Positions 1-41,700 of a stretch of 64,000 bases of DNA are shown here, one piece after another. The DNA is from Paragordius varius. Lineage: Eukaryota; Animalia; Nematomorpha. How positions within the stretch are numbered: the first letter of the stretch is position 1; every line of letters begins with the position of its first letter. A program made the translations under genes and the position numbers. The stretch covers positions 4,836,001-4,900,000 of the forward strand of contig OZ176055.1 of NCBI GenBank assembly GCA_964247055.1, given 5' to 3'. The notes under the pieces were generated by a model, which did no database searches, was not told the origin of the DNA, and was given only the letters and a program-made list of their open reading frames with translations.

Positions 1-2380
1 CATTATTGGCTCGTAGTGTGGATGTGATCAACTTCCTGGGGATACAATCAAAGGCCCTTTGTAAATCAATAAAAATATGATATAGTTTTTTATTTTTCGC
101 TAAATAGTTCTCTTGCAATCTTCTCAAAATGAAGATTGCATCAATTGTGCTACTGTTTGGTTTATAGGCATATTGTGATTCCTGTATACTAACGATTGAT
201 CTTAGTTTTGATTCAATAATGGATTCAAAAATTTTTAACGGGTGTTCCAACAACTTTAGTGGTCTGTAGGAGGAACAAACGAGTATGTCTCCTTTGTTTT
301 TATAAATGGGTTTGATGGTGCTTTTTGACCAATCATTAGGGATGCGATTCGTTGATAAGATTAGATTGAATATGTTAGTTAAATGTATAATGCATTGTGG
401 TAAAGCTTTGATCATGTCACAGCTGAGTTCAGATGGACCTGTAGCTTTGTTATTTTTCATCTTGGCCAAGGCATCTCTTACATCATGTTGTTATCAATGG
501 TCGAGGACCGATTGCTGGTTGTTGGTTTATTGTTTCAAAATCATGTTTTTGTGCAAATTGTTCTTTGTAATACGTTGTCCAGACATTGCTTATGTCACTC
601 CACTCATTTACTAGTTGTTGATCTTTATTTTTAATATAGGAAATTTGTTTAATGTCCTTTTTATTATTGTTAACTGAATTTATTGTTCGAAAAATCTTAA
701 GAATTTTCATGTCTTGTTCTAATTTTTTAGCTAAATCCAAAGCTTTTTTGTTGGCTGAAATATTGATGGCTTGTTGTAAATTTTTATTTGATTTAATATA
801 TGATTCCACGTCTCTTTTATCTTTTGTTTGTTTCCATCTTTTATAGTTATTGCGTTTAATTTTAATTAAAGGTTTTATGGATTCTGACCACCACAAATTT
901 GATTGTTGTTTTTTCCTGTATATTTTCTTTCTGCCACAACAATTAAGCACATTTGGGATGATGCTGTTTTTAAAATTATCCCAAGCTTGTTCAGATGTTT
1001 TGTGGTTGAGGCTAAGCGATGCATTAACAGTTTCTGAGAGTTGAAGTTTAAGATCAGGAAGGTATAGTTTTTCTAAGTTTATTTTAGGTTTCTGGTTACT
1101 ATGGTAATAGGATTTGTTTATTATTATTATTGCTACAATTAATTTATGTTGTGTGTTAGTAAGGTATGTTTTAGAGTCTTTATTGAATTTTCTATCTTGT
1201 ATGGGTGTTAAAATTTAGTCTACCATAGAATTTTGATTACCACTTGTATAAATTATTAATTTCTTTGCTGGTTTCGTGAATAGGGTATTGCAGATAGTAA
1301 GTCTAAGAGATGCGCAGTATTCTAATAATGTATCACCTTCTTTGTTACGGCTGCCAAAAGCGTTTCCTCCATGTATTCTCATATAGTCTTCACCATTAGT
1401 GCCAAAGTGGGAATTAAAATCTCCACCTATAAAAATTTTGTCATTTGGAGGTATTGCATGGGAAATGTCGTATAGTTGGTTCCAAAAGGCTTGTTTGGTT
1501 GCTTCGCTTAATCCAGACTGGGGAGCATAGATGGAAAGTATGTTAAAAATTTGTTTTTTAAAGCCGATACGTATTTGGATAATTCTTTCGTTGTGTCTGT
1601 TTACTTCTATTATATTATCACAATATTCATTTTTAATAGCTATAGCCACTCCATGTTGGCCTTTCATTTGACCTTTGTAGAAAATTGTATAGTTGTCTAT
1701 ATTCAGCTTTCCCTCAGATTTATATCTTGTTTCCTGCAGGCAACAGATGTCAATGTTTTTCTCTTTTATTTGGTCGATAACTAAGTTTGATCTACCGACT
1801 AGCGTCGAGATATTCCAAGTGCCGATCTTAAGTGGTTTTACCATATTGTTGGGGGTTTTTTGATGTTTGTGGTTTTTTAGGAGAGCATTATTATTGTTAT
1901 CATTTAAATTAATATTATTATCAAAATTAAGATTATCATATATATTAATATCATTAATAAAATTATTTGTAAGATTAATATTATCATTTTTAAAATATAT
2001 ATCATTGTTTAAAAGTGTTGTCAATTCATTCATTATTTTCATATAGGGTATGATTAAGGCGATTGTTTTACAATTTGCATGTCTTTGCAAATCAAGAGAC
2101 TATTTCGGTGTCTCTGACCTATGGAATTGCCTTTCTGGGCTTACGGAGTTCCATCCCCGCTTACATATATTACAAATTGGTTGTTTCTAGCAACTGGTTA
2201 TAGCGCCAGATAAACCCGCTTTATCATCTGTGCGAATGCAGGTATTGTGGTATTTTATAGGTATAATGGTAGTTTATTTTTTTCCACCACACCCCACACA
2301 GATGATTTCTTTCCTTTGCCGCTCCCGTTGGTATTAACCGGGGTGCACCACGCGGAGGTGGGAATCGGACTTTGCACCCC
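1..2380 (-). mobile_element. RTE-like non-LTR retrotransposon, 5' half (APE + start of RT), decayed
   Basis: APE motifs GTWNISTL, CCLQETR, GGDFNSH (1215-2042); RT N-terminal blocks at 1-480 (KATGPSELS, YRPLKLLEH, TIDAIFILR, FIDLQRAFD); HDV-like fold at the 5' end. Confidence 0.92.
2319..2380 (-). ncRNA. HDV-like self-cleaving ribozyme (copy 1)
   Basis: On the - strand: P1 GGGGTGC/GCACCCC, P2 CCG-A-TTCCC/GGGAG-CGG, P3 ACC/GGT, L3 TCCGCGT, GG for P1.1, tiny P4, J4/2 CCAAC. Confidence 0.85.
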
Positions 2381-2867
2381 TGATTTAGAGTTTATATTAA
2401 ATATTAAAAAAAGGTTAAAAATAAAATGAATAATGATATGAGATTTAATTAATAAATTGAAAAACAAAACAAAAAAGCTAAAGGACCAACTTGAAGTGGT
2501 TCGAGGACACTTTTGAAGTGCAAATGATATATTAAAAAAGCACTCACATCAGAGCATAAGTAGGTGAGTAAATGAGAACCCAAAACAATGCAGTATAAAA
2601 AATATCTTATATTTACATAAGTTGTGTTAAAAATACGGAAACGATATGGCCAAAATAGTAGACCTTATACCTATATTTTGAAAAAGAGACACAAAGTGAA
2701 TATTTTTAGTTGGCATTAATCATGCAATCAAAATTTGCTTTCATTTAAACATATTGGAGGCGGAAATAAGCATTTAAACAGTTTAATACAGAAAGAAACA
2801 GAATGTTTTGATTAATATCTAAGAAGGCGGAGTAAAACTGATATGAAAAGCGCGGTTTTTATAATAA

Positions 2868-38700: not shown

Positions 38701-41700
38701 TGCTTTATAACATTAATGACCTTTTTTATATCCTTATAATCATTTCAACGTTTACATCCCTTTATTCATATTTTGGCATCCTAAAACTATGCTTTTACAT
38801 ACTTGTATTGCCCTAATTTTTAATATCAATGAACTTTGACAACATATTATGCTTTTAGCCATTATTTCCATAATATAAGTTGGCGATATGGAACTTTGGT
38901 TAAATCAATCACCTATGTTAAAAAACGCTTTTTCTGCATTTCATTAAGCTGTGTTGGTGCAGGGACGCAAACAACACACAATATTAATTGGCTTAATTTT
39001 TACTGTTTCTACCTTTCATACATAAAGCGATTTTAGTCAGGTAATTAGATAAATTAATCGATTTAATTTTATATGACATATATTTTTGGTCAAAAATATT
39101 GGATATCAATATGTAGTTATATCATGTATAAAAGTTTTTTAGCATTTAAAAGGACAAGCAGCATTTGGGGAAATATTTGTATATATAAAAACCTATCCTG
39201 ACAGTTAATTTTTTAAGTTTTATGTCGATGCTGGAATAATAATGCTGCTTCAAAACGGGAAATTTGGTTTTATAAAAAGGGGTTAAATTGTAAAAAAAAC
39301 TAGCTCTAAATACACTTTTTAGTTATTATCGTTGGCAATGATATTAGATATTAGAAAATACAAATTCAAATTCTTTTTGTCAAATGAGGACTGTCTATTT
39401 AATTTAAATCGTAGCCCCTCATTTATATTATTTTTCGCTACCTATTTGTCTAGATAAAGTTAATATTTTACGTCGCTCTATATTCAATAAATATTTATTT
39501 TTTTAACCATTTCACACATATAATGTGTTTTAATATTATATATAACATTTTATAGTTGGCCTACTATTATCACAAAAAAAATTGGAAAACTGCCATTATT
39601 TGTGCTGATACATTTCGTGCCGGTGCATTTGATCAATTAAAACAAAATGCGATCAAAGCAAGAATCCCTTTTTACGGAAGGTATATATTATTTTTAAGTA
39701 TTATACACTAAGGAAGTTTTAATAAACACTCCTAATATTTTAATATAAAATAACAACATTATTAATATTACAATTACTTTGCTGTTTTTTACATTATAAT
39801 TGTTAATATATCATTCATCCTATTTTTAAACATAATAATGGCTATTATTTTATTTTCATTTGCACATTCCGTAACCGTCTTTTTTGAGAGCTCACAAATC
39901 GCAAAAAGAGGAAGAAAATTTAATTTCAAATATTGTATTTGGCTAAATATTTTCAAAAATACGTGACATCTATATGTGAAATGTTTGCTTCGAAGATATT
40001 TTTGGAAAAACTGTTGACCCAGTTAAGTTTATAAAATCTATGATAATATATATGTTTTCGCAGAATACGAGCCATTATTTAGTTCCGCTTAAAGCGGGAT
40101 AAAGTTAATCGTTTTTGACACAATATTCCTCGGAGAAATTTTATTATTTCATAAAGATTGTAATTTTCTTTTACAGATATAAATGAAGTTTTAATTATAT
40201 CGTTTTTTAGTAATAGTGAGATAACATCTTTGTATTTTATTCCATGGTAAACTTTTACTTAAATGAATAGTCTTTTAACATTTTCCGATTCATAATATAG
40301 ATATTTTTATAGCTATATTCTCTTTAACCCCGTATTTTTCATATATCATATTCAATGATTTTCCATAAAATATTAACATTATTTTTTTTAATACTCAATA
40401 TAATACATCCATAGTTTTCATTTTAACTAAGTGCCTAGGGACCATCTTAGGGTATGCGATTAATTACATTTCCAATTTTATTTTGATATAGTTATGATGA
40501 AATCGATCCTGTCGTTATAGCTAAAGATGGTGTTGATAAATTTCAAAAAGAAGGCTTTGAAATTATCATAGTAGATACAAGTGGAAGACACAAGCAAGAA
40601 GATGCACTCTTTGAAGAAATGCTTCACTTACAGATTTCACTGGTATAAATTTACGTTAACCCTTATTGAATCCCATTCATATCACAACAAAAAAAAATTT
40701 ATATTTTGCAAAATCCTACCTCCAGCTCCGCGTGGTGATGTCCGGAAACTTACACGATGTGTAAGGCCAACGGAGGAGGTCGATTTGAGAAGATCATAGT
40801 CTTTTTAGACATTCTCTAGCCTGGTACAGCGTATAAGGTACATTCACCTCTGAGTTAAAGGGGTTGATTTATAAGGGCATATAATACGTAAAACCTTGCC
40901 TCAAATATAAAACCATGAAGAAACGACTTACAAAAATGATTGATGATAATAAAACCTTTTTTTCAAATCGAAATTTTAATTTTGATATAAATAATAATAT
41001 ATATTATGATAATGCAAAATATAAAAATAGAAATAATAATAATTCAAAAACAAAAATAAATAAACCAGGTATAAATGAACACCAAAAATAAAAATGAGAT
41101 ACAAGAATCTAAATAAAAACTTCAAATCTATATCGGAACCATTTAAAATTAGTTCTTGGAATGTTGGAACAATGGTAAATAAGCAATGGCTGGTTATAGA
41201 TACGGTGCGGAACTTAGATTTAAACATATGCTGTTTACAAGAAACTCGATGTAAAAATGCAGGTATAAAACACTTTGATAGATATTCATTTATACCAAGG
41301 TGGGAACAAAGGACAATCTGGCGTAGCCATAATGATGAAAGATACACATCGACAAAGTCACCGTGATAGGATTATTCAAGCTAAATAATATAAACAAATT
41401 GATCCTCAATGTTATTTCCGTATATGCACCCCAAAAAGGCTTGCCCGATAAATACAAGCTAGATTTTTGGGATCAGCTCTATCAAATATATACTAATATA
41501 TCCGAAACAGACTGCATAATGATTAAAGGAGTCCTAAATGAACGTTGGAAGCGAAGGCTTTTCTGGTATACATGGAGGATACAACTTTGATAATCGGGAC
41601 AAAAAAGGAGAAAATGTTTTAGTTGTGCATCTCAGCGACTACTAGCAAACACTCTGTTCACCAAAAGCAAAAATAAACTGATTACATACACTTCTGGCAA

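Follow-up and report, generated by a model that had tools for sequence, protein, structure and literature searches.

The window analysed here, 64,000 nucleotides (nt) at positions 4,836,001 to 4,900,000 of contig OZ176055.1 in the assembly GCA_964247055.1 of the nematomorph Paragordius varius, contains five sequences with the ribozyme fold of hepatitis delta virus (HDV) at the heads of long interspersed nuclear elements (LINEs). We read these sequences, with a probability of about 0.88, as HDV-like self-cleaving ribozymes that form the first 62–77 nt of several related RTE-like LINE families of about 3.4 kb. This reading draws on a fold with covarying helices, on conserved core bases and on a predicted cleavage site that coincides with the 5′ end of the elements; it is an example of a mechanism already known from such elements and involves no new kind of RNA.

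A sequence-only reading of the window had proposed five HDV-like folds, and a regular-expression search for the core motif on both strands recovers exactly these five. R1, a covariance model built from genome relatives with a training set that lacks sites 4 and 5, returns the same five alone when the window is scanned with filters off (41–67 bits, E 4e-7 to 8e-13), and its next-best match in the window scores 13 bits. Sites 1–4 lie on the minus strand with G1, the first ribozyme position, at 2380, 6319, 13829 and 38058, and site 5 lies on the plus strand from 40712:

2319–2380, minus strand: site 1, a 62-nt ribozyme of family A without P4 and with an intact fold; R1 score 67.1 bits.
6256–6319, minus strand: site 2, a 64-nt ribozyme of family A2 with P4 nearly absent, an intact fold and G1 at 6319; R1 score 65.2 bits.
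13755–13829, minus strand: site 3, a diverged family B ribozyme with a P4 of 7 base pairs (bp); R1 score 58.9 bits.
37984–38058, minus strand: site 4, a relic of a family D ribozyme; R1 score 41.3 bits.
40712–40779, plus strand: site 5, a 5′-truncated family B ribozyme in which the 5′ strand of P1 is missing; R1 score 55.1 bits.

Judged by their bases, sites 1 and 2 are the only copies in the window predicted to be intact in fold, as had been claimed for these two, and sites 3, 4 and 5 appear to be decayed or 5′-truncated remnants of old insertions. In site 1, P1 pairs 2374–2380 with 2340–2346, P3 and L3 span 2347–2359, J4/2 (CCAAC) occupies 2327–2331 and the 3′ strand of P2 occupies 2319–2326; its two changes from the family A consensus, a P2 C-G to U·G and G1·U to G1-C, both keep pairing. 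The sole change in site 2 relative to its sister copies turns CCAAC into CTAAC, a variant also used in other families. Compared with family B copies L003–L008, site 3 has A in first place, so that the pair at the cleavage site becomes A·C, and outer P2 and P4 each contain one mismatch; we take this copy as a probable relic. Aligned with seven genome relatives, site 4 has lost one L3 base, which leaves a 6-nt L3 and breaks P1.1, and carries two mismatches in the 3′ strand of P2. In site 5 the ACC of P3 has changed to AGC, which breaks the helix, and the first eight bases have been lost, since similarity to the element of site 3 begins at ribozyme position 9; this copy is unable to form a cleavage site. 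The P1 strings offered earlier as covarying are correct apart from the first P1 position of site 3, a mismatch that had been taken as a pair, and the two oddities reported for P3 and L3 both exist with their labels swapped: the AGC belongs to the copy at 40712 and the shortened L3 to the copy at 37984.

We evaluated the fold in a 78-column alignment of 23 representatives from at least five families, counting the full double pseudoknot of P1, P2, P3 and P1.1. Standard pairs fill 96.1% of cells, compared with 36–48% when the 3′ partners are slid by 1–3 columns, and both partners vary in 13 of the 20 pairs. At 0.476, the covariation score lies above the 0.065–0.095 of the slid versions and is reached by none of 500 shuffles; the covariation first noted among the window copies holds over this larger set. 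P1, a helix of about 7 bp between the strand that begins at the cleavage site and the one immediately 3′ of P3, is formed in 96.9% of cells with changes on both sides at five of seven pairs, and P2, which closes the 3′ end and makes the second pseudoknot with P1, is formed in 93.4% of cells with changes on both sides at seven of eight. P3 is invariant (ACC/GGT in 23 of 23 representatives), with an L3 of 7 nt. P1.1, in which two L3 bases pair with those immediately 3′ of P1, is formed in 97.8–98.4% of cells, as CC/GG in families A–C and as GC/GC in family D. In a further alignment of 65 distinct copies fitted to P2 and P3 only, 81% of P1 and 98% of P1.1 cells are paired; these copies include 5′-truncated ones, which are the source of many of the unpaired P1 cells. 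MAFFT misaligned the 3′ half when given the five window copies alone, and the 23-sequence set with genome relatives aligned cleanly.

The core bases are conserved as well. Columns T25, C29 and G30 of L3 and C65, A67 and A68 of J4/2 are invariant in all 23 representatives, and they match the active-site positions whose conservation has been described in HDV-like and R2 ribozymes (PMC3774820). By alignment to the drz-agam-1 and HDV models, C65, within the CYAAC of J4/2, would be the catalytic base. P2 consists of three outer pairs, one bulged A (23 of 23) and five inner pairs, and its 3′ strand, P2′, starts after the fifth J4/2 base. The ungapped P2 register of the Rfam model was tried and rejected: it pairs 59.3% of cells and leaves two positions that never pair, against 93.4% for the bulged register, and on this difference we regard the A bulge and the lack of a partner for the last C of CYAAC as real. 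The P2 strings, the CYAAC J4/2, the A bulge and P4 sizes from a 6-nt linker to a 7-bp stem had all been described correctly from the window copies.

Comparison of element copies places their 5′ ends at the predicted cleavage site. In family A (18 copies), pairwise identity is 0.34 at positions −30 to −1 from G1 and 0.95 at +1 to +30; the corresponding values are 0.40 and 0.98 in family B (4 copies) and 0.36 and 0.97 in family C (14 copies). Upstream flanks are unrelated between copies, and many BLAST matches to the site 1 ribozyme start exactly at the base equivalent to G1. In families A, B and C, between-copy identity begins at G1, and the element therefore has its first base at the predicted cleavage site. 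Published reports on RTE and other clades agree with this (PMC3774820, PMC6765202), and for RTE cleavage at the exact 5′ junction is reported (PMC3774820).

Cleavage, co-transcription and any role in translation belong to a model, which we infer would run as follows. The element would be transcribed within a longer read-through transcript, and the RNA would fold into P1, P1.1, P2, P3 and an optional P4. The cytosine that opens CYAAC would act as the catalytic base, and the RNA would cut itself immediately 5′ of G1. The product RNA would begin with the first base of the element and could then be reverse-transcribed into new sites.

The sequence-only reading had assigned the folds to the heads of LINEs, and the downstream sequence agrees. 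At all five sites, coding remnants of an apurinic/apyrimidinic endonuclease (APE) and then a reverse transcriptase (RT) follow on the same strand, as detected with the Pfam domains Exo_endo_phos and RVT_1 and a tblastn map:

1–2318, minus strand: LINE 1 body, with APE at 2090 to 1218 and RT at 989 to 2; it runs past the window start.
2869–6255, minus strand: LINE 2 body, with APE at 5854 to 5234, RT at 5058 to 3646 and a Cys-rich tail at 3801 to 3430; the frames are broken.
11145–13754, minus strand: LINE 3 body, with APE at 13307 to 12897 and RT at 12654 to 11340; it is heavily decayed, and the coordinates do not denote a mapped 3′ end.
35190–37983, minus strand: LINE 4 body, with APE at 37565 to 37018, RT at 36796 to 35508 and a PHD-like motif in 35187–35666; the coordinates do not denote a mapped 3′ end.
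40780–42973, plus strand: LINE 5 body, with APE at 41127 to 41719, RT at 41933 to 42721 and a Cys-rich tail to 42973; the coordinates do not denote a mapped 3′ end.

With its ribozyme, LINE 2 is about 3.45 kb long (2869–6319) and ends 3′ in a short AAC repeat near 2869. LINEs 3 and 5 are 77% identical. An N-terminal APE followed by RT, a compact length of about 3.2–3.5 kb and a short simple-repeat 3′ tail are typical of RTE-type elements, and we describe these LINEs as RTE-like retrotransposons without long terminal repeats (non-LTR), a clade assignment made from architecture. The G+C content of the window is 25–35%, as in an invertebrate genome, and no part of the sequence resembles human DNA.

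The closest Rfam family is drz-Agam-1 (RF01787; curated gathering score 37 bits). In relaxed local scans, drz-agam-1 aligns end to end at sites 1, 2, 3 and 5, with scores of 26.9, 20.4, 17.6 and 27.4 bits that all lie below the gathering score, and site 4 gives no Rfam match even in these scans. Over the whole 110.6-Mb assembly, RF01787 yields 53 matches at E ≤ 1, of which 19 exceed the gathering score (best, 50.6 bits); these 19 copies are members of the sister families B and C. Of 14 control genomes, none has a match above the gathering score, and eight have sub-threshold drz-agam-1 matches. Families A and A2 fall below the Rfam threshold because P4 is replaced by a linker of 6–8 nt.

R1 identifies at least 148 copies in the genome at E ≤ 0.01, a lower bound in that R1 scored 150 candidates only. 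The retrieved copies form five main families together with a few family C variants (for example, L001 and L024/L029), and the families differ in P4. Family A (window site 1) has no P4 and a 6-nt linker, and family A2 (site 2) has no P4 and an 8-nt linker; P4 is a 7-bp stem in family B (sites 3 and 5), a 4-bp stem with a GAAA loop in family C, which has no window site, and a 5-bp stem in family D (site 4).

The same design occurs outside this genome. A scan of metagenome contigs for the core plus CYAAC found 67 loci, many of them complete folds with P1 paired at 7 of 7 positions. In the complete folds, the five bases before P3 pair 5/5 with the five bases after CYAAC, compared with 0–2/5 in most for the register in which the final C pairs. 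Among these relatives are loci in which an A-rich J1/2 leads into TCC or CC, loci whose P2 bulge is A or T, and loci with 6-nt P4-less linkers (for example, L097, L102 and L104). When they are added to an alignment fitted to structure, the bulged-register P2 pairs 95.5% of cells across many helix sequences; P1 is not aligned column-wise in this alignment and is therefore uncounted, and its complementarity comes from an offset scan. APE follows on the ribozyme strand in three metagenome loci, with RT next in L096 and L122 and APE only in L089. Because the search pattern itself required CYAAC, the scan shows occurrence outside the genome and not frequency among HDV-like ribozymes. The proposal that the window copies represent a lineage-specific variant is not supported by these comparisons: families B and C pass the threshold of drz-Agam-1, a mosquito family, and the same design is present on many metagenome contigs from other samples.

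A separate observation concerns J1/2. This linker (AAA, A or G, T) and the CC that follows it (columns 8–15) are conserved in sequence in the genome families, in many metagenome relatives (seen, for example, in loci L090, L099, L135, L137 and L152) and in the Rfam drz-Agam-1 consensus, beyond what base pairing alone explains.

Known ribozymes provide close parallels. The drz-Agam-1 HDV-like ribozymes come from Anopheles gambiae (Webb et al. 2009, as cited in PMC13648714), and for drz-Agam-1-3 catalysis at 2.7 per min has been reported, with P4 not required (PMC13648714). The families described here share with drz-Agam-1 the topology, an A-rich J1/2 followed by UCC, P3 ACC/GGU, L3 UCCNCGU, P1.1 GG and J4/2 CUAAC. 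They differ in that P2 carries a one-base bulge (always A in this genome) and the fifth base of J4/2 stays unpaired, in that the host belongs to another animal group, and in that families A and A2 lack P4. As in published ribozymes of non-LTR elements (PMC6765202, PMC3774820), the ribozyme stands at the very 5′ end and the cleavage site is the first base of the element, whereas the families here are new, occur in another host and have predicted activity. P4 may be absent or too short for a helix in R2 ribozymes (PMC3774820), and minimal P4-less HDV-like ribozymes include the metagenomic drz-Mtgn and theta (Riccitelli et al. 2014, as cited in bioRxiv 10.1101/2023.06.13.544163). Families A and A2, at about 62–64 nt and without a P4 helix, resemble drz-Mtgn, theta and the P4-less forms of silkmoth R2 (PMC3774820). 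Their setting is animal LINEs and not phage or tRNA contexts, and unlike the silkmoth R2 forms, which have J1/2 loops of hundreds of nucleotides, they keep a short J1/2 and an 8-bp bulged P2.

Several results weigh against interpretation of these sequences as self-cleaving ribozymes. The independent evidence amounts to about five to seven families plus the metagenome relatives, and not to the number of aligned rows, because members of one family hardly differ from one another. Folding energies computed without pseudoknots show no advantage over those of shuffled sequences (z from −1.2 to +1.3), and minimum-free-energy predictions each recovered only one half of the pseudoknot; a near-zero z is expected for a double pseudoknot, yet the energies lend no support. 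A default Rfam scan of the window at gathering thresholds returns no match, and with scores below 37 bits the window copies are not RF01787 members by Rfam's rule, their families being related to RF01787. Site 1 carries G1-C where family A has G1·U. Neighbouring open reading frame (ORF) fragments, which might have pointed to co-transcription with a host gene, have no Pfam match.

The likeliest alternative, which we still consider improbable, is that the fold is conserved and the ribozyme is dead. The sequence would then serve as a structured module of the 5′ untranslated region (UTR), through protein binding or in the manner of an internal ribosome entry site (IRES), and a promoter starting at G1 would set the 5′ end. 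Strong sequence conservation in J1/2 and outer P2, beyond base pairing, would suit such a module, and IRES-like and protein-binding roles have been reported for retrotransposon HDV-like ribozymes (PMC6765202). Nevertheless, it is the bases relevant to catalysis that are invariant across families (T25, C29 and G30 in L3; C65, A67 and A68 in J4/2), drz-Agam-1 as the closest Rfam family has an active member in drz-Agam-1-3 (PMC13648714), and the roles of UTR module and ribozyme are not mutually exclusive.

We give still less credence to the idea that sense intronic copies have been co-opted by the host or affect it, such that host pre-mRNA would be cut and gene expression lowered or regulated. 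Sites 1–3 do all lie on the minus strand, but the ORF fragments next to the sites lack Pfam matches and do not establish the strand or exon map of a host gene. Nor does accounting for these copies call for locus-specific conservation, since they are typical of their dispersed families and their flanks are unrelated; this counts against co-option. Finally, chance resemblance, in which GC-richer segments of LINE 5′ UTRs happen to fit an HDV-like descriptor, could draw on the sub-threshold drz-agam-1 matches in eight of 14 unrelated control genomes and on the ordinary folding energies, but it is effectively refuted by the covariation counts, with compensatory changes in three helices plus P1.1, window E-values of 4e-7 to 8e-13, and 19 genome copies above the curated threshold versus none in controls.

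Interpreted as ribozymes at element 5′ ends, these sequences provide a well-supported annotation of how the 5′ end is defined in several LINE families of an AT-rich animal genome, and enlarge the HDV-like class by at least 148 genomic copies that show natural covariation; the known function of such ribozymes is unchanged. Both the compact P4-less forms and the combination of a bulged P2 with an unpaired fifth base in J4/2 are found repeatedly in sequences unrelated to one another, and the Rfam drz-Agam-1 model, which misses these copies with its ungapped P2 register, could be improved accordingly. More tentatively, and on balance doubtfully, the conserved A-rich J1/2 with (U)CC, the one-base P2 bulge, the unpaired fifth J4/2 base and the dispensable P4, four features that occur together both here and in metagenome contigs of other samples, may mark a distinct, widespread subclass of RTE-associated HDV-like ribozymes. 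If so, the extra conserved bases could contact tertiary structure, protein or the ribosome in a manner undescribed for HDV itself, and the 62-nt forms would rank with the smallest ribozymes of the class that occur naturally in animals.

The surrounding sequence contains further LINE material. Past the RT, LINE coding extends through a Cys-rich stretch with a match to Pfam PHD (26.7 bits; cut-off 24), and this tail is common to several element families, at 35187–35666 and 3430–3801 on the minus strand and at 42563–42973 and 52868–53215 on the plus strand. A further copy of the LINE 2 family lies at 51090–53732 on the plus strand; it is 78% identical, 5′-truncated and ends in the same AAC-repeat tail. 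The upstream side of this copy was considered as the place of a sixth ribozyme, and the R1 scan and sequence comparison find none there, the copy being 5′-truncated. Isolated LINE-derived RT and APE fragments with no associated ribozyme lie at 8376–8669 (minus strand) and 46997–47251 (plus strand), and short minus-strand ORF fragments adjoin site 3 at 14160–15027, those tested giving no Pfam match.

The 5′ junctions of some copies elsewhere in the genome carry additional sequence. In L043, L044, L015 and L062, a partial duplicate of the copy's own J1/2-P2-P3 lies about 10–24 bases upstream of G1 of the complete copy (near locus position 1500), an arrangement that resembles the outcome of template switching or of partial insertion in tandem. 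In L038, a family A copy, 15 or more consecutive G residues directly precede G1, likewise near locus position 1500, and may reflect untemplated addition or slippage at the 5′ junction.

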